DNA of 64,000 nt from Carpediemonas membranifera BICM (lineage: Eukaryota; Protista; Fornicata): positions 975,478-1,039,477 of the forward strand of contig JAHDYR010000038.1 in NCBI GenBank assembly GCA_019828565.1, in the 5' to 3' direction. Shown here piece by piece: positions 39,664-62,929 of the stretch (position 1 is the stretch's first letter; each line of letters opens with the position of its first letter). Made by a program: the position numbers and the translations under genes. A model generated the notes under the pieces. It saw nothing but the letters and a program-made list of their open reading frames with translations, was not told the origin of the DNA and searched no databases.

Positions 39664-41956
39664 TGTCACAGCATCTCCCTCACTCCCAGTGCACTTTAAG
39701 GTAAATGGATTTCCCCGTTTTCTGCTGCCATCCGGCACAGTGATCACTCCTGGAAAATGGTAACGCAGAATCATCTGTTCCTATCTGATCTAGAATCTGT
39801 TACGATCAGAACCTTCACTCGGCACTTCCGAGTCCTCAAAGCCCAATTTCCAACTCTTTCGCCATCCGACTGTATTTCAGAAGAGATTCTTGATGTCCTT
39901 GAGCTTCGATATGAAGTTGATCTCTCTTCCGCAACCATTGAAGATATCGAGGCTTCTCTCCTCACGCACCTCCTACCTCCAACACTCAATGGATGCCTCC
40001 GAGCAATGCGTGCCCTCCAGATGCCTAATCACGACAACAAGCTTCACTCGATCCTCTTGTACGTCCGAGAGCTCCGTGCGCTCTACAAGCACGCTCTAAC
40101 GTTCATCCCCGACCACGACCCGCCCAAGCCTGAAGCTGATGATGACGACCCCGACGTAGACGCTCTCGCTGAGCTACTGGGCTCCTCGCCATCCGGGCCT
40201 AGCCCCGCTCATCGGGGGCCTGAGCAAGGTCGCCGCCCGTGTACTCCTCGCCGCCATCAGGCCAAGTGAGCTTCAAGCTCGCCTCAAGACCGAGGTTGAG
40301 CTACAAGGCGCTCGCCTGTTCGAGGATACCGTTCAGATCGTGAAGACCGAGGTCGAGCGCCTCCAGGCGCTGGCAAGCGATCTGGCAGGCCTCGACATCT
40401 CGTCTTTGACACCGTCCACCACGTCAGCTGCCGTGTTGACCTCCGTTGACCGCCCTCGCCAAGGTGGCGGGCAGAGCCGCCAAGGCCGCCCCGCCATAGG
40501 CCGAACACATGGGCTCCCGGCCACACCCTCCAAGACCCCCTGCCCATTCTGTGGTGGTTGGCATTGGAGGTGGCAGTGCCCTAAGGCCGACGCCGCCCAG
40601 CGAGGCTCCACCCAGCAGTCCAACCAGTCGCCGCACCCGGCACAACCGACCGGCCAGCATGACAAGCAACAGCCACATACCCAAGCCCGACATACTTCGG
40701 GCAACGCCAACCGCCAGCTGCCAGTGCCTCAACCAAATGCGGATCCCACTCAGCAGTCCGACCGCCGCGCTGGTAGGATGAACCTCCGCCCCAGCAGCAC
40801 CCTCAAGAAGGGAAGACCAGTGCATGAGACCGCCCATGCCCAGCCGGTGCAGTCTGTCGACGAACCACAGCCCGACTCATCCTACTTCACCGTCCAAGGG
40901 AAAGTCAACGGCGAGACGCAGACAATCCTGATTGATTCCGGTTCCGCCCCAAGCTGTATTTCGCAGTTGTTGGCCGAGCGCCTCAAGGCCACGATCGACA
41001 CATCCGTCTCAATTGCTCTGTTGGACGTCAATAAGCAGCTTTTTTATGACGAAGGGCGTAGCAAAGGTGAGTCTGAGCCTTCCATCTGCGGGCAACGCCA
41101 TGGTCACTACCGAGGCCACCTTCCACGTAATCGAACGCGACGATGATCACATACTCGTTGGTTGTGATATCCTCAGAGCTCTTGGCTTCCTCAGCGCCAA
41201 GGGCCTCTTCGTCCCTACAGGCGTCGACTGCAACGAAGACCCCCAGACCACCGAAGGGCTCCCTCCCCACAAGTACCTAGACCCAGTCCCTGTCGCTGAA
41301 GCCTCAGCTGCTCCACAGTTCTTCAGCGATGAAGTGGACGTATGTCCTGATCAACTACACGACCCTATCCGTGAGATCCTCCGCAAGCATGACGCCGTGT
41401 TCGATCCAAACCTCCCCGAAGAGCCGGCAGCCTTCCCCCCCATGACCATCCCGACCGACGGCTACATTGTCAACATGAAGCCACGCCCTCTGGCATACTG
41501 TAAGAATGGCTAGAGTCTCCCGGGAGATACCCTGGAGATACTCCAAAAAGTGCAAGAAAAAATGAGATTCACTAGAATCTGTTTCACATTTCACATATTT
41601 CACAAGAATATGTGAAATGAGAAGCAAAGCTAGTGAATGTCATTTTTACTTGTCCCTCATCGTCTGTATGGCATCTATAAACAAATCGCGTATCTCTTGC
41701 AGCAGAAACTCTGTGTCATTCACCTTTTTGTTGATTTCTTCTTCCTTTCGCAAGCCCTGAGCAGTTTTTCGGATTATTTGGTAAGAATCTTGTACTTTGG
41801 CAACTTCCACGAGCCCTGAAGTTACCGTTTCTACCTTTTGGTGGCTAGTTGCTCGAATCATGATCGACAAATGTCGCAGTTTTAGGTATTGTCAATGCCA
41901 GGAGTCTACGTAAATAGACAAATGTAACAACGTAAACAGCTTGGATAGAAATTCTC

Positions 41957-43180
41957 ATGAATTCAGAAGTGTCTGTACCAGAACCTATTGCTGCTACGCC
42001 CCCCATCAGACAGTATGGCAACAGTAAGCTCGCAAATCTCCGTCGTTCATTTGTTACAGCCGTTGTTTCTTCAGTATTTGAGGACGACGAGGCAACTGAC
42101 CTCGGCTTGAGTGCACGCGACATCCATAAGGTACTTCTGGAGGTCCAGCGCAGGGTCGCCGCCGAATGCCCTGGGTTCAAGTCAATTGAACTCCGGGAAC
42201 AGGTCAGGCGGACGACTGTTGTCGGCGTTACTACGTTTATAACAGCAGTTAGACCCTCTGCGGAGTACAATGGCTCTGTCATGCAGCACATTGCTGTCCG
42301 TAGTCAGCCCTGCCATGCCGAGTTCCGCCAGATGCTCTCAGAAGTTCTCTCAGATGCTGGACTGAACGATGTTTCCGACTCAATCAGCCTTGAGAACTTG
42401 CCTGTGATCAACCGGGTGAGATATAAGCCTGTCAAGCAAAAGGCAACGGTCAAATCGACCCCCGACTACGATGATCAAGGCAGAGATCCCACCGATACGG
42501 TCGACTACGCAACTGTCTTCACTTGGTGTTGGTGATGAAGCAGACACACCTCAGTCAACGACAGATCGATCGGTGCCGGTTCGGAAGAAGATCGTCTTTG
42601 ACGACGAGGAAGCCAAGCGACCCAGGCTTGGTGACGACGATCTGCAGCAGGTGTCTAACAACGTGTCCGATGCTGTTGTTGACCGTATTAAGGTCCTGAT
42701 CAACGACGTTGTCTCAGAGACCCGTGTGAGAGACCCGCCTACCGAACCCGAGACATGTAAGACGACTTTCCTTAGCCTTCATCAGCGCAAAATGCTATTT
42801 GGATGTCTTGTGTGTGGTACCCCCGAGTGGTTCTTCAATCCAGACGGCACTACGTTCAGGAGATGCTGTGCTTGCAAAGGTTTCCTGCACGAGCAATGTG
42901 TCAGGACGAAGGGCAAGAAGGACTACTGTCCCGCGTGCTATATTACCGGCTCTAGCAACAAGTGCCAGGCGTGCAAAAAGGGCCTAAGATCAAGAACACG
43001 AAGAAAGCAGAAGAACAGGCTTCTACTCTTCTTTGCTGCCGAGGCTGTCACTGGTGGTACTGTGAGCATTGCTCTGAGGAAGTGCAGTACACCATTGATG
43101 GCAAGTTGTACATCGTTCCCCTCTGCAGCAAATGTAAGGTTGTCTATAAGCGAGTAGAGGGCATGAGACCGATTGTTTAG
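41957..43180 (+). CDS. T1 cargo: PHD finger + FYVE/ADD-like C4C4 finger protein (spread over three frames)
   Basis: C4HC3 finger CLVC...CCAC....HEQC...CPAC, then CQAC...LLCCRGC...YCEHC...LCSKC. Confidence 0.75.
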
Positions 43181-43223
43181 TGTTTTGTGAGAGATGATCA
43201 TAAATTGTATATATATCTGTTTA

Positions 43224-44230
43224 CTACACGTCTCTCTCAAGCGCACGGGTCATCATGCTTATGTATCGATCATTCATAAGTCTTCTCTGGTCGGTTCTTA
43301 ACGGGTCATACTCGTTGACATCAGAAACGATGTCTTGCATTTCAGGAAGAGGAATGGGCCGGGCATAGCTAGTCTCAGACATGATGACCCTGGCCTCGTT
43401 GGGAAATGACAAGGAACCATTGGCTATAATCCGTCTTCCTGCTGAGCCAGGCGCGAAACGATAGCCAGAGAAGTACTTCGTCAGAAAGAAAAGAGGATTG
43501 TCGAGGCATGTCACGCGGTAGAGCCAATAGGCGTCCTGGAGAACAAGCTCATGCGCCAGAACCTTCTCAGGAGTGAGGATAATGCATGTGTTCTTGTACT
43601 TGGCTGTCGAAATAGCACTGCACAGCTGAGACTCCTCAGATCTGTCGAGTCCGGAGCAGGTGGCAAAGTAAATCAGACGCACACGCGTCGATCTCACCAA
43701 GGAAGGGCTCTCGAATGACCTGAGGATGAGCTGGACCAGATCATGGTGATACAGAAACTCGTTCGTAGACGTATCAATGATCATACGCGACGTTTCTGTA
43801 TCAGAATGACCCGATATCACCCAGTAAGTGTCGAAGTTAGAGTACTGCGACGCCAACTCCTCAAGTACCTCGGCCAGATGGGACGTAGACTTAAAAGGTG
43901 CGGGCAACGGCAGTCAGCCACTCATCATCAACGAGCTCTAGAGCCGTCTTGAGCTTGAAATGATAGCCAGATGAGTTGGCAAGACTTTCCACGCGGAAGA
44001 CGGGGTAGGGCTGAGTCGGGGTCTCGAAACCATGCAGCGGCTCGATGGTGATTAGCACCCGTCGGTTAATCAACTTCTCTGTTGTAAAAAGGACACTCGT
44101 GAGAGGAAGAAGACTTGAAACCGATCCCGCGATGTCCACGCCTGAGCTGAACCTTACCACAGACACATTCAAAGACTTCTTGGTCCTTACTGATGCGTCG
44201 CGTGCCGAATTCTCCGTATTTCTCGTCCAT
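43224..44230 (-). CDS. T1 cargo: CHAT/caspase-fold-like protease (two apparent +1 homopolymer shifts near 44085 and 43895)
   Basis: YWVISGHSD and VRLIYFATCSG match the clan CD His-Cys strand motifs (hhhxGHG / hhhhxAC). Confidence 0.6.
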
Positions 44231-44234
44231 TTGC

Positions 44235-44267
44235 AATGTGCCATTTTTTTTTCATGAATGGCACATT
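44235..44267. promoter_or_regulatory. Inverted repeat AATGTGCCATT-N11-AATGGCACATT; near-identical reverse-complement copy at 49237-49268
   Basis: Seen directly; both copies lie just upstream of cargo start codons. Confidence 0.6.
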
Positions 44268-44424
44268 TTGATTTGAAGCAAAGGACAAGCTTTTTGATCC
44301 AAGTAAAGAGGTATACCTTCATTGCTACACTATTTATGCATGCTACTGCAGTATTGTTCGGATCTGATCAGCGATGCGCCTGTTCTTCGGATCGGGAGTT
44401 GCGAGAAAAAAAAGAGAACGAAGA

Positions 44425-45428
44425 TATGGCGAGAAGAAAGATGCCCGCAAGGAAGCAGCAACCGGTAGGTAAGAGAAGGACTCAAAATCCACCCAACAAG
44501 ACTTTTGAGTCATCTGCTTCTCCGCAGGATCAACGTCCTGCGGAAACGACTGTAACGGCAGCATCACCTCCTCCTCCGCCTCCCAAGTCGCCCGAGGATG
44601 GTAAGGAGCAAGATTCTCCTCCTCCTCCGCCTCCCGAGTCGCCTTCCCATTCATCCAGCTCGTCTGAAGCCGAGGGAGGACTCCGTCGAGGGGTCCGTCA
44701 TGCACGTCCACCCTAGGTGGACGCATGTTTACCCGGGTTCAGACCTGCAGGACGTCAAGCGGCTGATTTCGGATGAGATAAGCCTTCAGGCCATTCCTGC
44801 TCCGGCCTGGATCTCATCCGAGACCCGTTGCGACCCCCGTCTGACCCAGGAGCCCGACCATCCGGCCCTCAATCGGACGCAGAGCGTCGGCCGAGGCATG
44901 ATTGCCACTGAGGATATCTCAGCTGGCACATGTCTCGGCATATACCTCGGGAAGCTGATTCCCGATGCTGAGACGGCCAGCAACAACGGCCAGATGGTGT
45001 TTGTTTCGCATATTCCATTACCATTACACAGCATGTCATTCGCTGACAGTCAGGTCGCCGTCGATGCCATGTCGGCCGCAGCGGGTGTCCACCTGATTAA
45101 CCACAGCCCTGACGATGTCAACTGTGAGTTCGTGGACGTCTTGGTGGATGGCCTGCCAGTGATATCGGTCAGGGCCACTGCCAACATCGTTCGCGGCGAG
45201 TTCTTGCGCATCGATTATGGCGAGACCTACTTTGAGGCCGATGAAGAGGAGCACCCGGTTGCTCGCTTCAAGAGTCTCGCCATAGATGACCCTCACTACC
45301 TCGCTCGAAAGGTGGAGCAGTTCAAAATACTGCAGGTCAAGCCGCAGCCCCGCAAGCGGAAGACCAAGTCCAACCCCGCCCGTAAGCGCTTCCACACTGC
45401 GCGCATGACTCAAGGCAAGAGTGAATAA
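44425..45428 (+). CDS. T1 cargo: SET-domain lysine methyltransferase (intron or frameshift near 44620-44715)
   Basis: GRGMIATEDI..G..LGIYLG, LINHS, VNC and ATANIVRGEFLRIDYGETYF. Confidence 0.9.
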
Positions 45429-45458
45429 ACTTGAAGAGATATCAATTCAATCAATCAT

Positions 45459-46834
45459 TTATGAGCGGGTGACATCCTCCGGACGAGTAGCACGCTTCTC
45501 GGGCTCTGCGGCAGCTGCCTTGCGCTTGCGGTCCGGAAGACTGTAGACACAGGCATGACGATTCTCGATGACGATGAACTGAGTGAGCTTCATGCTCTCA
45601 CAAAGACCTAAGATCTTGTCCAGCGTCGCATCCTGGATGGGCAAGAACTCTGAATCTTCCCAACCTTTGTGGACCCAGAGGCAGGTAAGGTCCTCGTCGA
45701 TCTGGGTGATGATTACCGGAGTGTGACTCAGCTCTACACTGGCCTGGATGGCCTCATGGTCTGCCCAGGGGAAAGGGGAGCCAGGCATCTCAGAGAACGG
45801 GTCGCCCTCGAACCCCTTGCCCTCACAGAAGGATCGGATGTCCTCGTACAGCTGAAGCTTCTCACCAACAGTAGGCTGGGACCCAGTCCTGATGAGATGC
45901 ATGGCGCTGAGAATGCATGAGCCATCCCCAGGCACCTCAGACCGCTTCAGAGAGCTTGTATCGTTCTTAAACTTCTTAGCGGTCTTCTCCATGATGGTTT
46001 GGACGTCATCTTTGGGGTCTGCGGCCACCAAAGCCTCCCGATCCAGGTCTATGACCTCAGCCTCCTTCTTCAAGGGCACAAGCTTCTCCGTCTCGAGCTT
46101 TTTCAATCTTGGCCCGGGCTCGCCAAAGCTCCCTCTTCAAATCACGGATCGCACCGTTGTGTTCCACGGCAAGATGGCGGCGCAGGAGGCGCGATGTGCC
46201 ACTCAGGGTACTTCTGTGGACGGGAGAGTCCATCAGAAGCGCGTCCAGGTGCCTTATCCGGTCGAACTGCACGTCGACCGGGTCCGACAGCTCAGGCTCG
46301 GCGTTGTTCTTGAACGAACGGACGACCCCCCGACCTTCCTGGCTTCACCTTGCGCATTATGCGCTCACGGAGCAGCGAAAGGACTGAATAAGCAGGAGTT
46401 ATTTGGAGTACTTACCTCCAACGTCGTGCTCGTGATCCGAAGACACTTCTCGGCGGACCTTCTGGACAAGGCTGTCGTAGGCATGATCTCCCATGACCTT
46501 CTTCAGCTCAGCCGATGTCGTGATCAGCTCAAGCTGAGCCTCGGCAGTTTCTCTTAGGTGCAGGATAAGGTGAGGCGACCTGAAGAGCTTGCGAAGCGTT
46601 TTCCAGCCAATATCTGTGTAAAAAGGTATGGGGAAAGTACTTACGATCACGAAGAAGGGCGGTGAGGATCTTGTCATCGGGCAGAAGGAACTTACGAAGA
46701 AGTGAGCACTTGATCATCTCCTGCGCGTTTGATGAGGCCTGACTGATCTCAGCGCTGTCATAGAAGATAAAGAACTGCTTACCAAACGTTTTCGAACGCT
46801 TCAAGAGCATGTAGAAGTCGAAAACCGATTGCAT
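45459..46834 (-). CDS. T1 cargo: OTU-family cysteine protease with N-terminal extension; introns 46614-46644 and 46384-46415
   Basis: VPGDGSCILSA, WADHEAIQA and ENRHA. Both introns are GTAAGTAC...CAG and link adjacent ORFs; two further frameshifts are needed. Confidence 0.75.
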
Positions 46835-46871
46835 GATTATAAGGCTCTCAGGACCTAATGAAAAATTCATA

Positions 46872-47000
46872 AGGCTCTGAGAGCCTAATAAACTCATGCG
46901 GAAAAATGACCAGTATCAGTAGGCAACGGCGCGGGAGATTCATTAGGCTCTGAGAGCCTTATACACGATTTCGAATTGGTGTATAAGGCTCTGAGAGCCT
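46872..47000. repeat. Three copies of the palindrome AGGCTCT-G-AGAGCCT
   Basis: Copies at 46872-46886, 46945-46959 and 46986-47000; a half copy at 46842. Confidence 0.9.
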
Positions 47001-47651
47001 ATGAACTCAGAGAGGTCCTCGGGGCACTTCGGTGCAGAATTTTTGATTGGGCATCTGATTGGACCATGGGGCGGATGCTCAGAGGGATGAATGCGAGCTC
47101 AATGGAGACCATTGGACATGTCAGAGATGGCATGTCCAGGTGAAGAGTCCATCATGGAAGGAGCCATTCACGATAAGTCTTCTAAATGTTGTGTTGCGAG
47201 CGTCTGAAGGGCTTTCTCTGGATACCGACCAAGATGGAGGTCACGTGGATCAACGGACGATAATTGCGGTATTCTGGCCTTGTATGCCACTCTTAAATCC
47301 ATTGTTTGATCCATTCCCGCGTTTATAGTTCATCTCAACGCTTCCTCGACGAGTTACAATTGTTGATGTTGTTTAGGTTCTATTACAGGCCATTCGAGGC
47401 CACAGAGCTCTCATGATGTTGTTTTTAGTGATATACACATGCTTGCCAGCGTTTGAGGATCGATACTCTTCTCCTTTCTTCGTTTGGTTTTCTAATTTCG
47501 TTGCGAGCATAAAGTGCACCTTGAAGAAACGTTATGCCTCCGAAACGGAGTAATACTGCTAAGAGCAAGGGCAGAAAGCGTCTAAACGCTGTGGAAATGA
47601 TTTCTACTTACTTAGAGAAGGAGCACGCTGCTGGAAGCATCTCCGCTGCCG

Positions 47652-48221
47652 ATGTCGCCACCGGAAACCGCATTTGCAATGAGGGTGGTTGACAGACGCC
47701 CCAATGACCTCCCCACATTCGTTCCGGAGGATCTTAGGGATGAAGCGGAGTTCCGTTCTCTCGATAGCATTGAGCAGATCATGGCGCAGTACAAGGGCGA
47801 GTCTTCTGAGGCCAAGGAGAAGCGCTTCAGGGCCCTCATCAGCCTGGACGCCGAAGGAGATGAGGTCGACCATGGCAGCCCTCTCTTGGCAACTGTCCGT
47901 GAGTACCGCGAGCTGTTCCACGGCATCCCTCAGTCGGTCCGCCCCCGCGCTTACGCCTTCGTCGCCCAGAGGCTTGGTATCTCTGTCGACAAGGTCAGAG
48001 AGGTCCTTCTGGAGAGTGTGTGCCGCAAGGACTCTAAGCTCATCTTCGAGCGTCCGCAGCTTGTCCTCAAGAAGCACTCGAAGACCTTCAAGGACCTCGC
48101 CGCTGTGATTGAGAAGAGGAACGCTGCCCGTGCCGCTGCAGAGGCTCGTGATGTTCTGCGTATACCCGTTTACGCGAGCCTCCTGCTCTTCCACGCAGCT
48201 AACGTCAACTCAAATGAGTAA
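47652..48221 (+). CDS. T1 cargo: unknown helical protein (189 aa)
   Basis: ATG-initiated, protein-like ORF between AT-rich spacers; no motif recognised. Confidence 0.55.
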   Translation: MSPPETAFAMRVVDRRPNDLPTFVPEDLRDEAEFRSLDSIEQIMAQYKGESSEAKEKRFRALISLDAEGDEVDHGSPLLATVREYRELFHGIPQSVRPRAYAFVAQRLGISVDKVREVLLESVCRKDSKLIFERPQLVLKKHSKTFKDLAAVIEKRNAARAAAEARDVLRIPVYASLLLFHAANVNSNE

Positions 48222-48344
48222 TAAATCGACTGCTTCTTCATTTAATCTTCATTCTCTTCCTCATCTTCCTTCTCAGACAGCAGATGGTACCACTCTTCCT
48301 CGAAATAGTTCTCTTTCTGGTAATCCTTACGCATCTTTGATCTC

Positions 48345-49200
48345 TTATCCACGATCTTTTTGGACCAAATCCCTTCGGTTGCTGTCGTAAAGGGCGATGA
48401 TTATCTCACGTTGCTTCTTGCGCGTCGGGTGCGGGGTAACACTCTTCCTCAGACGCTTAATGTAGCGGTTGAGCTTGTCCGAGGGCTTGGTGGGCAGGGT
48501 GGGTTGGGTGGCTTGGGTTCTCTTTGGGGGAGGCTGGACCTGGTCCACAGAAGTGAAAGCCGTACCGTAGTCGACGGACGGGGGAGCCCTCCAGGACTTC
48601 ATGGCATATCCATGGCAAGCAACGAGACTCTCACCGAGCTTCGTCCACTTGTTCGGGCCGTATGTTGCCTCCATGGTCACCAGTTTCGCATCATCCAGGT
48701 ACTCCATCGTGGACTTTTGCTTGGAGATGGACATCCCCATACGCTGGTAGGCTGGCACAAGAGAACTTACACACTGCAGGCGGATCCTCTGTCCGGCAGA
48801 GGCAACCGAAAGAAGAATCGTGGCGAGACCATTGCCCCTGGCATAGAATGCCGTGCGAATAACCACAACATATAAGTCCTGGCGCAGCTCGGAAGGGGTT
48901 TCATCAGTAGCTTCGGTGTTGTATGACTCCTTCGTGAGCAACAAGGCCGAAATGATGGAATCAGTCTTGCAGTCACGAATCGCAACCAATCTGGGTAAAT
49001 ACCTGGGCAACACTGGGTGAACAAACATGAAGAAGCGATGATCGATGTCATCAACTCCTCTCGTGGCAACGTCCTGCTTAAAAAAACGTACGGACACTGG
49101 GGATGATGTCTGACTTATCAGAAAGTCTTACGTACTGTATATAAGCCTTATGGGCTGCAAGAGTATCCTCTGTCCAAGATTCTTTCCCCGTTTGGTTCAT
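48345..49200 (-). CDS. T1 cargo: GNAT acetyltransferase (probable short first exon from ATG 49200)
   Basis: Motif A LYVVVIRT...ARGNGLATILL and motif B LVPAYQRMGM. Confidence 0.75.
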
Positions 49201-49330
49201 TTTCACAAACTTTTTGTGAAACCTGCGAAATGTGAAATGTGCCATTCATGAAAAAAAAAGTGGCACATATGAAAAATGAATGAATTTATCACGGAACCAT
49301 CTTACATCACTTTTATATCACGCGGATGCC

Positions 49331-51883
49331 TCAATTCTGTCTGCTACACTCTCCACACAGGCAGCAAACTAACTCTATGCCATGGTCCGCCAGACTGCAT
49401 GACATCGTGCCCTCCTCACCCCACGTCAGCGTCGTATGCTCTTCTACAAACTCCCACACTTCATCAACAGTCTCCTGAAAGGTCTGGATCATCTCACGAG
49501 TTGGCTCGAAGGTCACGGTGGTCAGTGTGCGGACACCAAACCAATGCTTCGCATCCTTACAGCAGTCGTGAACTCGCACACACTTGAGTCGCTGGAGCTG
49601 GGGGACAGAGTAGTCCTGCCGACCAAAAGAACGCATGCCCGTCAGGAAGGAACACGCGAGAGTTGTCTGCTCGATCAAGCAAATGCCCTCAAGGACTGCC
49701 TTCCTGTGCAACTTGGCTGCTACCTCCTGGTTCTTGATGAACTCTCGCTCAAAAGTACTCCTCTAGGATATAGAACAGCGGCACCTTGAGATGCTTGTGG
49801 CACAGGGGGCTGCGTCGTGAGTCTGCTGATGCTGTAGAGGTTCTCAGCGCACGGTTTTCTCCTTCGTCTTCGCTTCGCTGCTTGATAGCAGGGATATGGA
49901 AGTCTTATCCTTGTTAGGAATGAACGCAATCGTGACGTGAATGAGGTGGGCCACTGCGGCAGCCATGAAGTGAAACGCGACAGCCGCGTCAGTCACAGGT
50001 TCGGACGAGTAGTACATGGCCTGGAGGTAGCCAATGAGCCGAATGATATCTTGAATGCACTCAGGGAGAGCAACGTAGTCCTCTTGGTCGTGGCAGCCAT
50101 CCTTACACGTGCGGACGACTGCTCGTTACAACCTACGGTCCTATCGATGCTTCGCATGGACGACATACGGCCAAGCTTGAGGTTGAGGAGCTTATTCTGG
50201 ATGATCTCCTCGCGGGACCCGCGGGTGGTGGGATGCTTCTTGAAAGAACCACAGATATGGGCAACCTGCTCGAGTAAACGGTGCGAGTCGTGCATGAATG
50301 GAGGGCATATGACGATCTTCTCAAGAGGGATGACACTACAATTCTCGAATACCATGCGTTCATTGGTGAAATCGCCATAGATTGCAAGTACATCTTGAAC
50401 TCGGTTCGGGTCGTCGACTTCAGCCTGGTATGCTGTCTTATCGTCCAGGTTGTCCTTGATGGTGAGACGATGGCGGCCTGCTATCGGGTGGAGCGCCTTA
50501 CTTTTTGTGGTAAATCGTGTTGCAAGGGTGTGGATAGTTGGGCCGGCCCGACTTTCTGGACAGCATGTGGCGGAGGGCGGCATGATCGCCCATGACGATG
50601 ACATGGTCGAAGATCGTGACCTCACCAGTGTCTCTGATGGGTATCTGACTCGTGTATAGGCGCTCAATCTCCTTCTCGACGCGAGAAAGAGACTCTTCCA
50701 TCAACAAATCACCCTCGCTACCCATATACTCGACTATACGGAAAGGTGGAGTAATCTTGTTGGGGAATGTGAAGCCTGTGGGGTCGTAGATGCGGAGCTT
50801 GAAGGCAGCAGAACCCCCTTTCCACCCGTCAAGCCATAGTAGGATCTTCATGGGGCTAAACGTGACTCCAACCCTGTTGCCAAGGGCGTTCTTGCATCGA
50901 ACGTAGTTGGGCTGGTCCGACTCGAGCCATTCCGGGTGGCGAACAGCTTGCTTGAGGTAACGAACGGCATCAAACCAGACTCGATCAACCTTGTCCCATG
51001 TGGAGCTGTTGAGCCGCTTGCCGAGGGTGACTCCCTGGGTCTGCTTGAGCTCAGGGCGATGACTTGTGGCCTCATCGCTCGTCTCGTAGTGAAGATCAAG
51101 CATTGGCTTCTCCCACTTGAAGTCAATGACGTTCTCCGCGTCCGTCAGGGGCTGGATATCGACACCCTCGTCCACCGTTAGGCGATTGGTGCACTCGAGT
51201 CTCGACTTTGTGCCATTTCTGCCCCACCGCCAGGTCGTGTTGACTGTGACAGACTCCACAGGGACGAGATGACCCAAGAAAGCAACCTCTGGTCTAGTCA
51301 GCGCTGCAACCAGGCCGTTGATCTTGGTGATATTGACCTGCAACTGCTTCACGAAGATATCAGCAGCCTTGCTGGAGATGATTGGCATATGAAGTCGCGC
51401 AGAAAGACTACGGATGAGCTTAAAGAGCTCATGGGTTGCGTTACAACCCGACTTGATGTACATCAGGATAGAAACAAGCTCCAAAATCTGCTTGTAGTTG
51501 TCAGTTTCCTCAGTTGAGACCTCGTGCTGTCTCCGCAAGCGTTCGTGGGTGACAGCAATACGCGCGTGGTCACGTACGAAGACATCGAAGGTCGGGGCGA
51601 CTCCTCTATGGGAACGTACTGCACGCAAGAAGGGTCGAGAGTCGTGCGGGTCGGCGAAAAATCTCGGATCGACCTCCATGTCCGCAAATAGGCCCTGGTT
51701 AGCCATTTCCAAGATGAGTTCACGGAATTCTCGGCGCTGGCGGCCTCGATCCTGTGTATTTCCGCCAATACCAACAAGGGAGAGGTATGTATGAGCGAGA
51801 ATGTAGTTCATACGCTCTGCAGTCCTTGGAGGGCCAGTATTGTCGTAGACAGTGCCAATGAAGGTCTGTATGACAATGTGCAT
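49331..51883 (-). pseudogene. T1 transposase, CMC/Transposase_21-like DDE, with several frameshifts
   Basis: ILLWLDGW, PPFRIVEY, VMGDHAAL and PPFMHDSH; the C-terminal blocks are collinear with the 871-aa T2 protein. Confidence 0.75.
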
Positions 51884-52398
51884 GCTCAGGAATTTTTGCT
51901 GAAGTCACTTTCACATTTCACAAGTTTCACAAGAGTTTGTGAAAGATTTTTGGTTTGGGGCTTCCGCTGCTCTGTTTCCTCCAAAAAGTTGTGAGCAGCA
52001 ACTACACTGAGTTTTATACGTATTCTATGCTTCTCATACCCATTGATGCGTTATTGCGCAATTCTGCTTTGCCCTCAAAGGAAAAGTGAATTTGAATTTC
52101 CCCCTGAATCTTGCAAGATACTGCGGAAGTAACGGTAAGAAAAAATGAAACTCGCCAACGAAAGCAGCTGGAAGAAAATGGTAAAAAGTATTGGAACTAG
52201 GACAATATGGTGTACACTCTGAGCAACTTCATTTCTTTCTGGCGTTCACCTGTGTCACGAGCTCTTTGGGCACTGTTTCGGGCGTTAGGACAAACCAAGG
52301 GTTCCATGATCCTTTGTTGATCTAGTTACACCTCTGTTGTTAGCACAATCTTCCAAGACCATCTCATCGTTGATAAAATTTTGCAGATTTTCGAATGC

Positions 52399-52504
52399 GA
52401 GAAAATGAAGACTTCCCCACAGAACCTGAGTATGTACGGATAGTACTTGACCCCCATGGATTATCCCCCCATGTTTGGTTTTTGTGGGGAAGTCTTCATT
52501 TCTC
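52399..52504. repeat. Subterminal inverted repeat with 28-bp arms
   Basis: Arms 52399-52426 and 52477-52504 share the perfect 19-bp core AAATGAAGACTTCCCCACA. Confidence 0.9.
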
Positions 52505-54111
52505 AATCTCTGATTCAATCATTAATTCATACGGAAGTAGAAGATACTGGAGGCTGAAAACTTCAGAGGGCATTGCTATTAGCTATAAAACACCGCTGTT
52601 AAGATCCCATGTTCGAACGAGCACTTCACATTTACAACATAAAATGCGTTATCCTCTTTTATCAACACTGACACCATGTGATACTTCAAGACGCCAGACA
52701 TGTCTTTTATGCTTCTATAACTACCTTCTAGATGTTCTGGAGGTGCCTGAGATCGCCTGGATCGCGAGGTTTGACCAGCGTTGACACATGAGTATCTCCA
52801 GAGTATCTCCCGGGAGACTCTAGCCATTCTTACAGTATGGGCTCCAGCCAAGACGGAGTGGCTGCACGATCATGTCTCAGACTTACGCGACAAGGGCATC
52901 ACCGAGGCCAACACCGGCCCATATGCCAGTCCAGTAGTCCTCGTGCGAAAGGGGGACGCTTGGCGGCTTTGCATCAACTATGTCCTACTCAACAGCCACA
53001 CCACCCGTCATCGACACCCCCTCCCCAACATGCGCGAGTTCCTTCGCCGAGCAAGTGGGTGCGACCGATTTGCCGCCCTGGACCTGACCTCAGGCTATTG
53101 GCAGGTGCCTATGGCTGACGAGGACAAGGAGAAGACCGCGTTCATCGCCCCTGGCGTGCATGAACAGTTCACCAGGATGCCTTTTGGGCTTGCCAATGCC
53201 CCGTCGCATTTCCAGCGAGGTATCGAGACTATCCTTGGGCCCATCCTCCATAAGGGGGTTGACCCGTACATCGATGACCTCTTCATGTACTCCTCCGAGG
53301 AACTTTTCCTCAAGCTTCTCGATGACACCCTCACTCGCCTGGAAGAAGCCAACGTCCGCCTAGGCGCAAAGAAGTGCCGAATAGGCTATTCCGAGGCCCC
53401 CATAGTTGGTTTCATTGTCGACAAGGCTGGAGTTCACGTAGACCCTGAGCGCACCCGCGCCCTACGAGAGCTTCCCCTCCCCACTGATGTCCACGGGCTC
53501 AGGACCGTGCTCGGCAAGTTCCAGTTCTTAGCCTCATTCATCTCAGAGAAACGCCATGAGCTGTTCAAGCCCCTTACCGCTCTCCTAGAGAAGGACGCCG
53601 TCTTCAGCTTCGGCCCAGCCGAGACTGAGGCTTTCAACACCCTTAAGTCCCTCTTCACCGATGACCTCTTCATCGCTCACCCAGACTTGTCCCTTCCTTG
53701 GACCCTCGAGACCGACGCTTCCAATGTCGGAGCCGGAGGTGTACTCTACCAGACTCCCAACGACAACTCGGGCAGACAAGTGCTGGCCTATTTCTCTCAT
53801 ACGTTCACCCCCACCCAGACCAGATGGGCTACCTGCGAACAGGAACTTTTCGCCATCGTATACGCCTTCACGCACCCCTCCCTCACCCACCTTCTGCGCG
53901 TGAAGCATGTAACCCTCAGAACAGACCACCGTAATCTGATCTACATGATCTACAAGTCCGCGACGAACGACAAGATCCTCCGCTGGCGTCTGACGCTAGC
54001 CGACTTCGACTTTGAAATCACACACGTTCCCGGGAAGGATAACGTCATAGCTGATTCGCTCAGCCGGTATGGCCACGGCCAGACTACAGCCCAACCCGTC
54101 GCCGCCATATC

Positions 54112-56796
54112 TGTCGATGCCCGTGACGCATCACCTGATTAAAACGAATTCTCGAATACCCGTCGTTTACGCCACAGTGATTAATCACTCCCTATGGCTA
54201 CGAAATTCGACGTAAGTTCCCTTCCACTGCTCAACTCCGCCGCGAAGGAATACAAGCGGGAACTTCCTCATGCAAGATTTCCTACATCGTTCCTCAGATG
54301 CCTAAGCATCAGCTCGCAGGAGTTCTTACGGGCCAATTGGAGACCCACCTCTGATTATAAGACCTTCGAGGACCTAGAAGACGATGTATGTCCCGATGCG
54401 GTAATCCGCAGCGCCATTAGGCGCGAGATGAAGCTCTCACTTCCCATCACGCCCCCAAGCACCTCCACGCCACCCCCCAAGCAGGCAGTAGCCCGTCTAA
54501 CCGCCGCTCTCGAAGAAGACCTGTTTATGCTCGCTGAAGCGGCGGCCGCGGCCTTTCCTGAAGGCCCGATGGCCGCGGCTGCACAGCGCCGCGCAGAAGC
54601 CGTATTCACGGCTGCAGTAGCCGAGATCGACCACAACGCCCCGGTTTATGTGCCCCTCATCAACAAGTTCAACCCAGATGTCCCCCTCCGCGACGACGAG
54701 TACGTCGCCGAGGTCAACGCAGCCCTGGCCCCACCCAAGCCGGCCGATGACGAGGCTGCCGCCACCAACAACTCCGACACGTCCAGTGACGAGTCCGACT
54801 GGGACGACGTCACCGACATTCGCGCCTACCTCCATGACGAGGCCGACTACATCGTAGCCGCCTGCTCCGTCACACTCATGCCGTCCCTGGACGTCGGCGC
54901 GCGCATCAAGTCCATCAACCTTCCCGGTGCACTCTATGGCAAAGCATCCAAACATCGCTCAACTATTGCCGCTTTGCGCGAGTTCATCGATCTCGTGAAC
55001 ACTGATGCTTCTGCTCCTGCACTGCAAGCCATTCCTTGGAAGGTTCTCGCCGCAAGAGTCAGAGAGCTTGCACTTAAGGGATTCTCCGCCGAAGCAAAGG
55101 ACTATTTCGACTTCTACATCATAGATGATGCAGAGGACATCGATGACGTCCTTGATAACCTTAGGGACCTCAAAGAGGACCACGACGGTTACATCGTCGT
55201 TCCTTGGAGAGCATTCCGCACCGGCCAGCCCCCGCAACCCCACGGTGAGCAAGCGACAGGCGGATCCCGCACACGCAAACCCATAGCCCGCAAGATCAGC
55301 GGCCCAGACCCGTATGTCCAGCTGAAAGACAAGGCGAACTACTACATCAACCCCACCTTCCGCCACTTCTGCGACTACCACGGATACAACTCGTCCCACG
55401 TCACTCAGGCGTGCCCTCATCTGAAGACACAGCGCAGTGCCGCCCCCCAACCATCGCGTCCTATTCAACCAGCTGTTGTGGGTGCCAAGCCCAAGAAGGC
55501 CCCTGGCCACCACAACAACCCTGACCGACCTGCAACAACGACCACCCAAACGCCCAAACGCAACGCGAGAGCCCCTAACCCAGCGGCAGGCTGGACGCGA
55601 AACAAGGAGACGAACCGGATCGAGCGCCTCAGTCAATCCATCAACGAGGTCGACATAGACGCCGAGTCCGACACCGATGAGTCAATCGACGAAGTCGACA
55701 CGTCAGCGCAGCGCGAAAACATCGGTAAGCCGATCTACCACGACATCCTCGTCAACGGCACGAGACTGCGGGCGAAGCTCGACCCGGCAGCCGCCAAGAC
55801 CTGTATCTCGGAGGCCACGTTCGCCACGCTGAAGGAGGCCGGCCCGGTAATGATCACAAATCATGCTTACACGCTGAAGATGGCCGACCAGCGACCTTGC
55901 GAGGACACCACCGCCGTCATAGCCGAGCTCGTTATCGACGGCATCGTACCAAACGCTGTCGAGCTGACGTGGACCGTACCAGTCATCTCCGGGGAGGCCC
56001 ACAAGTTCCTGTTCGGGGCAGACCTCCTCCGGCACCTAGGCCTCATGTCGGACACGGGCATCAACATTCAGCTACCACCGTCAGCGGAGGACCCCGCCGA
56101 CGATGTCACACCGGCCCAGAATCAATACATCGACGAGGTTGACTCGGAGACTGACGACCTGCCGGATGACGTCTCGTCCTTCGCCACGCCAACCTTCGAC
56201 ATTGACCCCTCGTTCCCTCTACACGACGAGCTACTCGCTGTGCTCCAGGCCAACGCCGACGTCTTCGACCCCAAGCTGCCTCTCGGCGGCGCCGACATCG
56301 CGGAAGCCACCATTGACCTGAAGCCGGACGCCATTCTGCCACAAGCCAACCCACGCGGCATCCGCGCCGACTGGCTTCCCGAGATCAAGCGACAGCTCCA
56401 TGAAATGTACGAAGCCCAGCTCATCCGCGACGCACACGGCCCAGTCTCTAGCCCGGCTGTGATTGTCCAGAAGAAGCCCGACGCGGACGGACGCCGCCCA
56501 CTACGACTTTGCGCAGACTACAGGGCCCTCAACGAGGCAACTGTGACTGACGCTTTCCCCATGACAGATACCCGCACGCTCATCCAGGACCTCGTCGGCA
56601 GCAAGTACTTCTTCGGTCTAGACCTTCGCCAAGGGTTTCACCAGATGCCATTGAAGGATTCCCACCGTTACCTGTCCGCGGTGCGGGTCCCGGGCGAGTT
56701 TTTCGAATATATGGTCGCCCCGTTTGGCCTAAAGAACCTCCCCGCACAATTCCAGCGGGCCATCGCCAACGTCCTGCGCCCGGTATACTCAGAGGG
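54112..56796 (+). mobile_element. Gypsy H: 5' LTR 54112-54176, gag-PR-partial RT (ORF from 54194), cut by I
   Basis: TGTCG...CCACA; CDYH...H....C; KLDPAA; LRLCADYR, LDLRQGFHQ and PFGLKN. Confidence 0.88.
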
Positions 56797-57208: not shown

Positions 57209-58354
57209 CATACTGTGAAAGTCGGCAGATAATCTACGATTTTTTCTAGATAATCTAGGGCCTAAAAACCCTAGATTATCTATTTCTTCCGGACCGAAAA
57301 TGAAGTATTCATTGAATTTAAACAATTTACGGGAAAATGAATACCTTCATTGCATACTAAAGCGCGTATGCAGAGAGCCTGCAAGAGGTCCAGTGCGGTC
57401 TAACCACTGATTTCGACTTCTTTGCGACGCAGGTTAAGGCAAAAGGATGAAACGAGCAATATCTCAAAATTGACACGTTGGAATCGGTACGAGAGTGATT
57501 TTGCAGACTGCTGACGGGATGTACATATGCGCAAAATCACTCTGGTACCGATTCCAACGTGTAGATTTCGAGATATGGTCGTTTTTTCGTTTTTCGACTT
57601 GATCAGAGTCAAATTCGCGAAAGAGAAGGCGAATATCTCTGTGAATATTGCAGACCACGAATCCAGACTGGGGGACACGTAGAATGTCAGGGGGAAGAAT
57701 ATGATGGTGTTGGTGACATCGCGTAAGGACGACCGGTCTTGCGCGGTCAACGCCGACAAAACTTGACGATTCAGAGAAATAAATGGCGCCACCGTATTCA
57801 GCACAAGACAGTGAACTCAGCTATATGGTTTTTTCTCAGTATATTTACCCAGCGGCTGATCCCACAGTTTAAGGACGGGTATTAGCCTGCACTTTGCACG
57901 AAAAAATTCTGCCTGAACACGACCAATTGTCCAAAACACAGCATTTAGCATGCAACATGAGCTGGAAGTAGCTGCAACATCTATTCTAGACCATTCAACA
58001 ACGATTACGCAGGAAATTGACGCAATAGAGGCCATTCAGTCCCATTACTTCATAGATTCACGCTTGAACGATATTACGAGCAGTATCAGGCGAGAAACAA
58101 GTAAGCTGAACGCGATTGGTGACTCCTTTCTCGCTGCGACATTTGCAGCATACTGACAGCCACGACACGCCATTAAGCTTATGTCAGGAGCGCCATCGCC
58201 AAACACGTAAATAGACCTGTACGACAACCAGAGACGGACGTGAGTCAGAACGGTGTGCTACCGGAATACGCAGGGTGTTTTATGCCCTGTTGATTCCAGG
58301 AGCACGCTGCTCTGGGCCACGTGAGATTGACCGCGAGACTAAATCCGATCTTTA

Positions 58355-60970: not shown

Positions 60971-61067
60971 GATTGGCCGCGGGCTGGTGAGTCTTTATTC
61001 TCCTTCTCTATTAATGTTAATGATTGGTTGTAACAATACCAATTTTTAGTAGAAAATCTACTCTGGA

Positions 61068-62349
61068 ATGACAGAAACGGAGCTAGAAACGAAGCGCGCG
61101 GCCGTAAATGAGAACATGGCGGACGATCATGCAGTTAAGGCTGTTTCTAAGAGATCGAGACCGATGACGAAGTGGAACACAACCGCTTTGAGTACTTGCC
61201 GGTCAATTCTCATGATGGGCATGCTTAAGGCCTTCTTCACGTTTGCGTTTGACGTCTTTGACTCAGACCCAACTGGCCTGTCCATCAAAAAGCTCGGAAA
61301 TGCGTTCAACCACATCATCGTGTCGTTTCTTCAGCCGTGCTCCGAAACACCGGACTTCCTCGATGAGCTGAAGTTGAAACCTGGCGTCTCGATGGGAAGG
61401 GTTGTTGCGAAGAACGTCCGAGATTGGGCTGAGACGATGGGGGTTACTGTGGCCATATCTGACGGGAAACCCAAGGTTGTCCATGCTCTCTGCAAGAGCT
61501 CCTCGCCCAGTCCGTTCGGAGCTAACCAGCGCGATCAGATCCGTCCTGTCGAGACTCATTATTCCTGTGCCAGATAATCTCGACTCCCGAGACTTTAATC
61601 TCTGTGTGCCCGATATCAATGACCCGGAGAGATTTGTGGGCAAGTGCAGAACAGTTGAAATCCCCAACCCTGCCACCCCCGCCCTTACACACGTGAAGCA
61701 AGAGCTTTGCGTGAAAAGTGAGCCTTTCCTGCACTCATCGTCCGGTCCCACTTCGGTTCCCTCTCCAGCTTCCCCTCAAGCGCCTCGCGAGTCGATTGTG
61801 CTGCACGATGTTCACCGTGTCGCGATGAGTGTCGATCAGAGGCTCGCCACCGTGGAGGCACGTCTGGCCAGCCAAGGGGACAACGATGACGATGTGTCTG
61901 AGGTCGGTGATGATTCTTTCTCGATTCTCGACATTCAGAATAGGCTGCTTTGTTTCTGTTGCGGCCATTGCCACAGTCTGGACTGGATCGACAATCGCGT
62001 GACGTCAAAGTTTGTGACTTGCCAGGAATGCAAAGTGAACTTCCACGACAACTCACGCTGTGTCCCTCCCCGGCCTAAGACTGGAAAGAACAAGAACTGG
62101 GCCGAGTCCACTAAGGGTCGCTGGAAATACACGTGTAGCTATTGCCTCAATGAGAAGAAGTGTTACGCATGCCGACGCAACGACTCAGCCGTGCACTGTA
62201 GGCAGTGCGGGCACTGGTTCTGTAACTCTGCCAACTGCGTACAGATGGAGCTGCTGAAGATTGTCATCTGTGGCAAGTCGATTCCCAAGATTCGGCTCTG
62301 TCCCGACTGTTACTCGTCGTACGAATTGGTGATCCAGAACAGTGAGTAA
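61068..62349 (+). CDS. T2 cargo: PHD + FYVE-like finger protein (two overlapping frames)
   Basis: CCGHC...CQEC....H....C...CSYC, then CYAC...HCRQCGHWFC....C...RLCPDC. Confidence 0.75.
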
Positions 62350-62929
62350 ATGAAGACATTGCTTGTTATTGAGTTGACCACTGTGGCAATGTTGATGCCA
62401 CATGATGACAGATGTGTGTACCATGCGCCCGGCTGCTCTTCCCCGCCGTTCTTCCTCACCGTTCTCCAGGCGCTCTTCTCGGGCTCCTGTCCCCATGCCT
62501 TCGTTTCCCTGCCGCTCTCCCTGCATCTTGCTCCCCGCCGTCTCTTTAAACAATCTTCTTGATGCCACCGTCACCACGCGATGTACTCCTGCAGCTTCGG
62601 AATCATCCTCAGTAGCGCTTCAAACATCATGCTGGCGTATCCTGCTGAATCCTTCGCCCCAGAGCTCATATCGGTTTCTTCAGAACGAAATTCTAAAGAA
62701 ATGTTCGGTGGTAAGTGAGATCACTGCGCGTCTAGAGACAGCAGAAACGTAACCTACAGCCCATATTGATGTGGGCTGGGCGTTGCTTCAACTGATAAAT
62801 GCCACATTTCTCTGTTTACATGGTAAGGTAACACGTGAGTGCTTTGTACTGGCATACTTAAAGGCAAGGTAAGGTTGGCGGACGTAGTATCACCCGTGGC
62901 GCTTGACTATCACTCAATCAGACAGATAT

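Follow-up and report, generated by a model that had tools for sequence, protein, structure and literature searches.

T1, a recently active cut-and-paste transposon of Carpediemonas membranifera with a RAG1/Transib-like predicted transposase and a conserved set of accessory genes

Organisation and mobility of T1

T1 is a DNA transposon of the metamonad protist Carpediemonas membranifera that was analysed in a 64,000-nucleotide stretch of contig JAHDYR010000038.1, here called the window. It carries seven genes, named A to G (Table 1). The termini of the element read 5'-CA...TG-3' and its two 50-nt terminal inverted repeats (TIRs), already noted in the original prediction, pair with 98% complementarity over their whole length. 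The GG found on both sides of the window copy had been taken for a 2-bp target-site duplication, and this reading is borne out by a perfect 2-bp direct repeat flanking 13 of the 15 informative copies (the window copy and 14 fetched copies, one copy having an N in its flank), where matching flanks have a chance of 1/16 per copy; in the remaining two the repeat is mismatched at one base. The duplications vary between copies (GG, TC, CC, CA, AA, TT, GC and CT), and T1 duplicates 2 bp of any sequence. The proposed empty site was found in four uninterrupted paralogues of the interrupted Gypsy element (L056-L059), in which the two flanks of the window copy are joined by a single GG.

At least 27 copies of T1, approximately 99.8% identical, are dispersed over many contigs of the C. 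membranifera genome, and T1 is a recently active, autonomous element. The reading frames of the window copy are interrupted by 1-bp indels, and a full-length, uninterrupted transposase frame is present in none of the copies of the assembly. Since 49 of 71 indel sites are located in homopolymer runs of at least four bases, which make up 4.5% of the bases of the element, the indels are probably long-read assembly errors, and the broken transposase frames would be homopolymer errors of this kind.

Table 1. Features of T1 and its target site (positions in the window)
Feature	Position	Strand	Remarks
T1 element	41494-52839		11.3 kb; complete cut-and-paste DNA transposon
Left target-site duplication copy, GG	41492..41493	.	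single GG in empty site of four paralogous Gypsy copies
Left TIR, starts CATACTGT	41494..41543	.	50 nt, identical in at least 27 genomic copies
Subterminal TTTCACATTTCACA-type motif pair	41582..41624	.	recurs upstream of genes F and A
Gene B, ~408-aa protein, candidate C-terminal C4HC3 PHD-type finger and second Cys-rich finger	41957..43180	+	
Gene C, ~334-aa putative caspase/CHAT-like (clan CD) protein	43224..44230	-	invariant Gly-His and Ala-x-Cys (alignments A4/A5)
25-nt element, C/D divergent spacer	44244..44268	.	perfect inverted copy (100%) at 49235-49259, upstream of F
Gene D, stand-alone SET-domain lysine methyltransferase	44425..45428	+	
Gene E exon 2, coiled-coil region and OTU-like cysteine protease domain	45459..46383	-	
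Gene E spliceosomal intron	46384..46415	-	32 nt, GTAAGT...CAG on minus strand
Gene E exon 1	46416..46834	-	start codon approximate; upper limit that of the original prediction
E/G spacer with three AGGCTCTGAGAGCCT-type palindromes	46838..47001	.	
Gene G, ~227-aa basic protein	47534..48221	+	seventh conserved gene
Gene F, putative GNAT-type acetyltransferase	48242..49202	-	start approximate
Gene A, ~850-aa DDE transposase, RAG1/Transib-like predicted fold	49331..51883	-	
Right TIR, last letters ACAGTATG	52790..52839	.	50 nt, pairs with left TIR
Right target-site duplication copy, GG	52840..52841	.	

The transposase

At the sequence level the product of gene A matches no Pfam family at E values up to 1, and a profile built from an alignment of 19 proteins (A3) retrieves neither RAG1 nor Transib from the PDB sequences. 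Its AlphaFold model (pLDDT 84, pTM 0.82) resembles both: all 48 Foldseek matches with an E value of 0.001 or lower are RAG1, BbRAGL or HzTransib (best 1e-9). In VIA comparisons RAG1 is matched with a Z score of 13.4 over 434 residues, a region of the RAG1 core that begins with the dimerisation/DNA-binding domain and runs through to the C-terminal domain, followed by BbRAGL (12.4), the P element (11.7) and HzTransib (8.7). The large open reading frame, initially proposed to be the transposase, is thus predicted to adopt the RNase H-like DDE fold whose absence would have spoken against that proposal.

In alignment A3 residues W205, D207 and D288 (numbered according to L031:207-2318:-) and a PPxMHxS motif are invariant, and a LLEExFER motif is conserved. 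D207 lies within strand 200-209 of the model and D288 just after strand 280-287, so that each of these invariant Asp takes a canonical RNase H position in the predicted fold. The catalytic residues are likely to be D207, D288 and E562/E563, the Glu being positioned by conservation and alignment span alone. The block following D288 in the 19 proteins reads GxxxGGxYPxPF and has no conserved Cys pair; the PPxMHxS block, a candidate counterpart of H937/H942 of RAG1, is located approximately 170 residues before the LLEE block, and the next His (H-x2-H) is a Phe in some members.

The accessory genes

Gene D encodes the best supported of the accessory proteins and is a SET-domain protein. Its Pfam SET match (4.9e-11) reaches 43.4 bits compared to a gathering score of 22.4, its matches among PDB sequences include LegAS4, KMT5A, KMT2A and ASH1L (down to 2e-7), and the aligned segment holds GRG, INHS and IDYG, corresponding to the SET GxG, NHS and C-terminal Tyr motifs. 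The original prediction listed PHD, SET, GNAT, OTU and CHAT-like genes, and this list holds with unequal strength: SET passes the Pfam cut-off, and the others are weaker but concordant.

The window copy of gene B contains 1-bp indels and its frame is open in L006:543-1784. All eight ligands of the candidate PHD finger (C290, C293, C310, C313, H318, C321, C331 and C334, spacing 2-16-2-4-2-9-2) are invariant in T1 and its sister families T3 and T4 (alignment A9), as are seven additional Cys. In Pfam the T3 and T4 orthologues match PHD or PHD_4 with E values of 0.005-0.006 and the T1 protein matches the Rubicon-homology family (2e-4), in each case below the cut-off, which together with the motifs is weak but concordant evidence for a PHD finger. 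The same searches give no kelch match and no recognisable domain in the N-terminal part.

The product of gene C is predicted with medium confidence to be caspase-like, on the basis of the modelled fold and an invariant His/Cys pair. Its model (pLDDT 61) matches caspase-11/-4, SAVED-CHAT and MALT1 in Foldseek with an E value of 5e-4, and 13 of its best 14 VIA matches are clan CD-fold chains with Z scores of 8.0-9.4, compared to values of up to 7.9 for unrelated alpha/beta folds. The Gly-His pair (H103) follows strand 95-100 and C153 is located at the end of strand 145-154.

Gene E combines a DGxC Cys loop with a following His loop, and the D, G, C and H residues of these loops do not vary between the three families (alignment A7). 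All 30 named language-model neighbours belong to PF02338 OTU (score 0.90), and the best PDB match, to OTUD3 over the Cys loop, is weak (E 0.54); the T1 protein does not reach the Pfam OTU threshold and the A7 profile has no match in the PDB. Motifs and weak but concordant matches suggest that the protein is OTU-like. One family fuses the caspase-like and OTU-like domains in a single open reading frame of 561 aa. Contigs from public runs, presumed at a guess to be RNA, cover exon 1 of gene E at 46416-46527 and 46615-46770 and omit exactly the 32 nt of the intron; X1 and X2 among these data are apparently a single data set. Such contigs cover genes E and G at least, with the GT-AG intron removed in E.

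In gene F the motif A/B residues (RGxGxA and a RLQC...Y...G block) are invariant in T1, T3 and T4 (alignment A8) and the language-model neighbours are GNAT families throughout (0.92-0.94). GNAT matches in the PDB are weak (E 0.3-0.9) and those of the T1 protein in Pfam are below the threshold, so that motifs and weak but concordant matches point to a GNAT protein. In related elements elsewhere a GNAT gene that Pfam recognises (Acetyltransf_7 or Acetyltransf_1) lies near the transposase gene; among these genes only that of L052 is linked to gene F by sequence (5.8e-5). Gene G, a conserved gene beyond the original gene list, is covered by a run contig at 47609-48232, has only sub-threshold helix-turn-helix matches in Pfam and shares 30-36% identity with syntenic open reading frames of T3 and T4.

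Conservation in sister families and other organisms

The gene order and orientation of T1 are alike in T3 and T4, whose transposases are 56% and 46% identical to that of T1. The corresponding identities are 59 and 49% for C, about 44 and 41% for D, about 38 and 28% for F, 36 and 30% for G, and 31 and 27% for B, and dN is lower than dS wherever dS is computable. In the ~80-bp termini of T3 and T4, the sole non-coding region compared, DNA similarity is limited to a 17-bp terminal motif common to T3 and T1. The ends of T1, T2 and T3 are CATACTGT...ACAGTATG, and the right end of T4 is also ACAGTATG. T3 has 48-bp TIRs, and 2-bp duplications flank two of its copies.

A related 11.6 kb element, L051 (GCA_002919055.1), has 74-bp TIRs, the termini CATACTGC..GCAGTATG and a GC/GC duplication. 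It encodes a transposase, a caspase-like protein (8e-16) and an OTU-like protein (1e-4), with weaker SET-like (E 0.02) and PHD-like (E 0.008) matches. L052, L055 and L062 contain subsets of T1-type cargo, and relatives with cargo subsets come from another assembly and a sediment metagenome. Synteny in T3 and T4 together with the cargo subsets of relatives elsewhere argues that the element has long carried this cargo under selection.

Relationship to known transposons

The predicted RAG1/Transib fold, the CA..TG termini and the 2-bp duplication place T1, as far as a modelled fold allows, in a very divergent lineage of the CACTA/Mirage/Chapaev/Transib (CMCT) clade, and the original description of a CMC-like cut-and-paste element holds in this wider sense. 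Mirage is the member of the clade with 2-bp duplications, and Transib and RAG have 5-bp duplications and CACNNTG heptamer-like ends. With its 2-bp duplications and CATACTGT ends T1 falls outside the strict Transib superfamily. The clade as a whole is defined by CA..TG termini and duplications of 2-5 bp (PMC12730594), and T1 shares the former and falls within the range of the latter. It also shares a DDE transposase that by prediction is nearest to RAG1/Transib structures and in which a long insertion separates the second Asp from the Glu. In contrast, GGxYPxPF takes the position of the C(2)C motif that other members have after the second Asp, PPxMHxS is invariant where H(3-4)H would be expected, a zinc-binding C2/H2 pair appears not to be conserved, and there is no sequence similarity to members of the clade that is detectable with Pfam or PDB profiles. 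Members of the clade have one or two genes whereas T1, which also stands apart in having a metamonad protist as its host, has seven. Like RAG1, which in RAG1/RAG2 (ProtoRAG) is paired with RAG2, the T1 transposase is accompanied by a separate protein with a candidate PHD finger, but gene B has no Pfam kelch match, which leaves a link by descent to RAG2 unsupported.

Some cut-and-paste transposons carry a single accessory gene, including VANC in VANDAL and Ulp1 in some MULEs and CACTAs. Single epigenetic cargo genes are likewise described, namely SET in HarbingerS and MuDR elements of Phytophthora and TET/JBP in fungal KDZ, EnSpm, Plavaka and hAT elements, and such transposon-borne chromatin modifiers are thought to counter silencing (PMC12730594). 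T1 resembles these elements in pairing cut-and-paste transposition with enzymes or regulators that would be able to act on chromatin marks. It differs in that T1 and its relatives have not one such gene but a constant set in which five can be recognised (a reader, two writers and two proteases), plus a sixth, with the gene order maintained between deeply diverged families. The open-access literature searched agrees with the earlier statement that no known element combines these functions.

Possible roles of the accessory proteins

T1 is proposed to move by binding of the transposase to its CATACTGT ends, followed by excision and by reinsertion at cuts with a 2-bp stagger. The accessory proteins would be long-standing, selected parts of the element, and their targets are most likely host chromatin and marks of the ubiquitin type: the PHD protein may read histone tails, the SET and GNAT proteins may write marks, and the OTU-like and caspase-like proteases may remove or cleave proteins of the host or of the element. 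Together they could keep T1 copies transcribable or guide integration, and they may form the anti-silencing module for operation within heterochromatin that was initially proposed. Taken as a whole, this picture of an autonomous, recently active transposon with old, selected and probably chromatin-directed cargo is the likely one.

The accessory proteins may instead act away from host chromatin, on the machinery of the element itself or on another host defence, for example by processing or stabilising the transposase, by limiting copy number or by countering ubiquitin- or protease-based immunity. SET and GNAT enzymes are known to modify non-histone proteins too, the caspase-like/OTU-like fusion fits a proteolytic or deconjugating unit equally well, and neither protein G nor the N-terminal region of protein B contains a recognisable domain. 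This reading is nevertheless rather unlikely, as a PHD-type finger, a SET domain nearest to histone methyltransferases such as KMT5A, KMT2A and ASH1L and a GNAT protein are most simply seen as a histone-directed set, and individual modifiers of chromatin or DNA are established transposon cargo (PMC12730594).

Host gene fragments are often captured by CACTA elements, Pack-MULEs and other DNA transposons, and the cargo could accordingly be a set of passively acquired, neutral host genes, the possibility of recent capture having been raised together with the original prediction. This is very improbable and already contradicted: the genes are syntenic in T3 and T4 at protein identities of 27-59%, although the transposases are only 46-56% identical; the compared termini share nothing past a short terminal motif; catalytic and metal-binding residues are invariant and dN is below dS; genes of the same kinds are found in relatives of the element from another assembly and a metagenome; and one cargo gene is covered by run contigs and has an intron that is spliced. 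Slighter still is the chance that T1 is mobile or repeated DNA of a different type, be it a virus-like element, an element moved by a tyrosine recombinase or a segmental duplication. Its length is considerable for a cut-and-paste element, it has seven genes and its transposase has no sequence-level family, but the TIRs, 2-bp duplications, exact empty site and dispersed near-identical copies, along with the RAG1/Transib fold predicted for the large open reading frame, contradict this reading, and capsid, polymerase, integrase and tyrosine recombinase genes are all absent among the open reading frames scanned.

Intergenic elements

The non-coding parts of T1 contain several repeated motifs. The TTTCACATTTCACA-type motif has five matches in the window, compared to 0.42 expected, and all of them are located within T1. 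The 25-nt element in the spacer between the divergent genes C and D and its inverted copy are possibly a shared promoter element.

Ends, copies and insertion site of T1

T1, the cut-and-paste transposon at window 41494-52839, is bounded by 50-nt inverted repeats which are 98% complementary and start with CATACTGT, and in the window it carries GG on each side. In the genome assembly (24.2 Mb, 69 contigs) its left 200 bp have at least 27 matches with 98-100% identity, and its right 200 bp have at least 22. Fifteen paired copies were fetched, of which 13 measure 11.30-11.35 kb, one has an 874-bp deletion and one reaches 15.7 kb. Perfect 2-bp direct repeats, whose sequence differs from site to site, flank 13 of 15 informative copies, the window copy included, while the flanking dinucleotides of the other two mismatch at one base. 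Four other copies of the interrupted Gypsy element represent the empty site, in which the window flanks are joined exactly with a single GG. The inverted ends, the 2-bp GG duplication and the insertion into a Gypsy pol gene, all originally read from the sequence alone, are therefore real. Since only 120 of 11,481 columns vary in an alignment of the 15 copies, T1 has amplified very recently. With T1 at about 28 copies, its sibling T3 at more than 20 and the 20-kb elements of a further sibling, T2, this transposon family is recently active in a small 24-Mb genome.

The reading frames of the window copy are disrupted by 1-bp indels, and each gene was therefore analysed in a natural T1 copy with an open frame and not in a consensus sequence; on stop-to-stop pieces of the window copy Pfam recognises only SET and a weak Cys-rich match. 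The T1 copies contain 71 indel sites of one or two bases, which are taken for long-read assembly errors because 49 of them fall in homopolymer runs of at least four bases, and such runs make up 4.5% of T1 bases. Contigs of public sequencing runs show the alternative state at four such indel sites. In this assembly many frames of the T1 and T3 copies are interrupted at homopolymers, and this suggests that long-read errors in its repeats were left unpolished. Two publicly annotated C. membranifera proteins related to the transposase, P0001 and P0002, are truncated to 571 and 558 aa, the ORFs of the best copies being 860 and 866 aa long. The T1 family is thus a practical warning, as public annotation lists shortened, 'hypothetical' proteins for it and its frames are disrupted by homopolymer errors.

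Transposase and placement of T1

In Pfam the product of gene A matches nothing at E up to 1, and a word-indexed protein search with it returns two proteins only, both from C. membranifera. When 1.84 billion representative proteins are searched exhaustively with a profile, only 18 relatives emerge, mostly from C. membranifera with a few from GCA_002919055.1 and from metagenome or read assemblies. None of the 18 carries a name other than 'hypothetical', and the named relatives of this large ORF are all C. membranifera hypothetical proteins. Across an alignment of 19 of the transposase proteins W205, D207, D288 and a PPxMHxS block are invariant, and the blocks RTTGCNEQ and LLEExFER are conserved. 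A profile search of PDB sequences with the transposase alignment finds neither RAG1 nor Transib.

An AlphaFold model built on the 19-protein alignment (mean pLDDT 84, pTM 0.82) gives 48 Foldseek matches in the PDB at E <=0.001, the best at 1e-9, and all 48 are RAG1 from mouse or zebrafish, amphioxus RAG-like or Helicoverpa Transib. An independent all-against-all structure aligner places model residues 1-607 on RAG1 residues ~473-1028 with Z scores of 13.0-13.4 over 420-440 residues, followed by BbRAGL (12.4), the P element transposase (11.7) and HzTransib (8.7). In the model D207 is part of strand 200-209 and D288 comes immediately after strand 280-287, where the first two catalytic residues of an RNase H-like fold are expected. 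The third is most likely E562 or E563 of the LLEE block, judging from conservation and the extent of the alignment. The predicted fold, with a Foldseek E of 1e-9 and a Z of 13.4, bears out the original reading of the large ORF as a transposase with an RNase H-like DDE fold.

T1 shares with the CMCT clade (CACTA/EnSpm-Mirage-Chapaev-Transib and allies) its CA...TG termini, its short target duplication and, according to the predicted structure, its fold. The C(2)C motif of the clade is absent from the T1 transposase, and the candidate His motif is the PPxMHxS block, invariant in the 19 proteins, whose match to the H(3-4)H of the clade is uncertain. Pfam and PDB profile searches detect no sequence-level similarity to known members. 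Transib proper is defined by a 5-bp duplication and heptamer-like ends, whereas T1 has neither. The early label 'CMC-like' is therefore right in a broad sense, and the best description of T1 is that of a very divergent CMCT-clade lineage; the data contradict the view that it is some other kind of mobile element. The kind of element, a CMCT-clade cut-and-paste transposon, is known, while the lineage, the host group and the fixed multi-enzyme cargo are new. The RAG1/Transib structural class would thereby gain a metamonad form so divergent that sequence methods miss it, and the T1 transposase would bear on the age and variety of V(D)J recombinase ancestors.

Accessory genes

Genes and candidate regulatory motifs of T1 (window coordinates)
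Feature	Position	Strand	Description
Gene B	41957-43180	plus	PHD finger and second Cys-rich finger (putative)
Gene C	43224-44230	minus	caspase/CHAT-like (predicted fold)
Gene D	44425-45428	plus	SET methyltransferase; Pfam 4.9e-11
Gene E	45459-46834	minus	OTU-like protease (putative)
Gene G	~47534-48221	plus	no recognised domain; seventh conserved gene
Gene F	~48242-49202	minus	GNAT acetyltransferase (putative)
Gene A	49331-51883	minus	~850 aa; DDE transposase, RAG1/Transib-like predicted fold
TTTCACATTTCACA-type motif	41582-41624, 49224-49244, 51909-51922		near left end of T1; upstream of gene F; 26 bp upstream of transposase start
25-nt inverted pair	44244-44268, 49235-49259		divergent C/D spacer; upstream of gene F
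AGGCTCTGAGAGCCT-type palindrome, three copies	46838-47001		spacer of divergent genes E and G

The original prediction listed reader, writer and protease genes within T1, and these calls stand with differing firmness. The SET assignment of gene D is firm by sequence, with PDB sequence matches to LegAS4, KMT5A, KMT2A and ASH1L down to 2e-7 and with the GRG, NHS and Tyr motifs present. The PHD, OTU and GNAT calls are supported by motifs together with concordant weak matches. Gene B has eight C4HC3 ligands spaced as in PHD fingers plus another seven Cys, all without variation among three families, and its orthologues in T3 and in the sibling family T4 give weak Pfam PHD matches; a profile search of its fingers against PDB sequences returns chance-level zinc-ribbon matches only. 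In gene E, whose exons were searched separately, the Cys and His loops are invariant in three families, the best PDB match is a weak one to OTUD3 across the Cys loop (E 0.54) and all 30 of the 30 named language-model neighbours are OTU proteins, with nothing useful from a profile search of the OTU alignment against PDB sequences. GNAT motifs A and B are invariant in gene F, whose language-model neighbours are all GNAT and for which profile searches of PDB sequences give only marginal GNAT matches.

The caspase-like call for gene C draws on a predicted fold of medium quality and a putative catalytic dyad. An invariant Gly-His and an invariant Ala-x-Cys follow consecutive core strands of the model (pLDDT 61), which resembles caspases, SAVED-CHAT and MALT1 (Foldseek 5e-4; Z 8.0-9.4), with generic alpha/beta folds scoring close behind; a profile search of PDB sequences with protein C finds nothing. 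Gene G is 30-36% identical to its T3 and T4 counterparts and gives only sub-threshold helix-turn-helix hints in Pfam.

Conservation of the gene set

Several families of T1-type transposase are present within the C. membranifera assembly. T3 (12.13 kb, more than 20 copies) has 48-bp inverted repeats and 2-bp duplications. Its transposase is 56% identical to that of T1, and the T4 transposase 46%; in both families the genes run B, C, D, E-slot, G, F, A as in T1, with their orientations unchanged. A comparison of termini finds no DNA similarity of T3 and T4 to other families except for a 17-bp terminal motif common to T3 and T1. Between families dN is below dS wherever dS is computable, although synonymous sites are saturated and these ratios are therefore unreliable. 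The E slot is variable, with an OTU-like domain behind differing N-terminal parts in T1 and T3 and no OTU-like domain detected in T4. The acidic coiled-coil C-terminal halves of the E-slot proteins of T3 (L040:4547-6055) and T4 (L038:4983-6665) are nearly identical despite transposases that are 47% identical, which points to a recent exchange of gene segments between the two families. In a putative further family, caspase-like and OTU-like domains are fused in a single 561-aa ORF (L047:420-2102, contig C68:697420-699102), with three copies including those on contigs C27 and C50. The fusion suggests that the two domains work together; a complex prediction for the caspase-like protein and the OTU domain, run without alignments (score 0.00), speaks neither for nor against this.

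The more distant T2 is weaker evidence for a heritable cargo than originally suggested. Intact copies of ~20.5-23 kb (e.g. contig C6:178016-198502) have 74-bp inverted repeats and the same CATACTGT terminus as T1, and encode a transposase 27% identical to that of T1, with a B-like finger protein (24% identity) and a weak SET-like stretch as the only detectable cargo. In the T2 copy next to T1, at window 57209-64000 and beyond (contig C26:1032686-1051877; loci L033-L035), two inverted left arms that share 99.6% identity over 4 kb enclose other repeats and a 100-N gap, and the dinucleotides flanking this copy are unequal; its structure may reflect a rearrangement or a fault of the assembly. A T3 copy on contig C42 has a T2-like element nested in it (locus L036, position 5726).

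Outside this genome, a contig of GCA_002919055.1 (L051) contains an 11.6-kb element that lies within a Gypsy element and has 74-bp inverted repeats, a GC/GC duplication and the termini CATACTGC..GCAGTATG. It encodes a transposase and caspase-like (8e-16) and OTU-like (1e-4) proteins and shows weaker SET-like (E 0.02) and PHD-like (E 0.008) matches, and its DNA is not found in the C. membranifera assembly. Both this element and T1 (window flanks 40932-41493 and 52840-54142) sit within Gypsy pol genes. Further GCA_002919055.1 contigs and one sediment-metagenome contig carry the transposase beside subsets of SET, GNAT, caspase-like, PHD-like and OTU-like genes, with GNAT recognised by Pfam on two of them; a metagenome scan with A10 matches PPCM01 contigs only. 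Across deeply diverged families, and in at least two other sources, the element stably carries this set of reader, writer and protease genes.

Possible role of the accessory proteins

Passive capture of host genes is contradicted by the gene order kept in T3 and T4 and by the subsets in other sources. Known cut-and-paste transposons carry, to our knowledge, at most one epigenetic helper gene, whereas T1 and its relatives carry a whole reader, writer and protease set. In agreement with the claim that no such element is known, open-access papers and preprints yielded no cut-and-paste element combining these genes and no account of Carpediemonas DNA transposons. Transposons with a single SET or TET/JBP gene have been described (PMC12730594). 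The stability of the set across families suggests that a transposon may bring its own chromatin and ubiquitin toolkit.

RAG1-RAG2 is the known coupling of a RAG1-type nuclease to a histone-tail reader. A tentative and rather unlikely explanation of T1-type elements is that they form an undescribed superfamily-level lineage of RAG1/Transib-fold transposons, in which the transposase works with a self-encoded chromatin system (PHD, SET, GNAT and proteases) as an independent or older counterpart of that coupling. The PHD reader would tether or license the transposase on marked nucleosomes, and the SET and GNAT writers with the OTU-like and caspase-like proteases would set or clear marks. If true, this counterpart of RAG1-RAG2 would be found in a free-living metamonad. 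The favoured reading is that the accessory proteins most likely act on host chromatin and ubiquitin-type marks. Its main rival, to which a low probability is given, is that they act on T1's own proteins or on another host defence and not on chromatin. Carpediemonas is culturable and T1 function may therefore be testable there.

Expression and candidate regulatory motifs

Contigs of three small public C. membranifera runs, guessed to be RNA and two of which seem to be the same data, overlie genes E and G and none of the other five, which says nothing about the expression of those. In one contig exactly 46384-46415 (32 nt) is missing, a stretch that reads GTAAGT...CAG on the strand of gene E; the loss of a GT-AG intron is a good sign that the contig comes from spliced RNA.

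The TTTCACATTTCACA-type motif has five matches in the 64-kb window, all within T1 (0.42 expected), and could serve as a promoter element or bind the transposase. A perfect 25-nt inverted pair, a T-run followed by CATGAATGGCACATTT, looks like a shared regulatory element. The spacer of the divergent genes E and G holds the three AGGCTCTGAGAGCCT-type palindromes, and one T1 copy (c11) is without 41 bp in this spacer.
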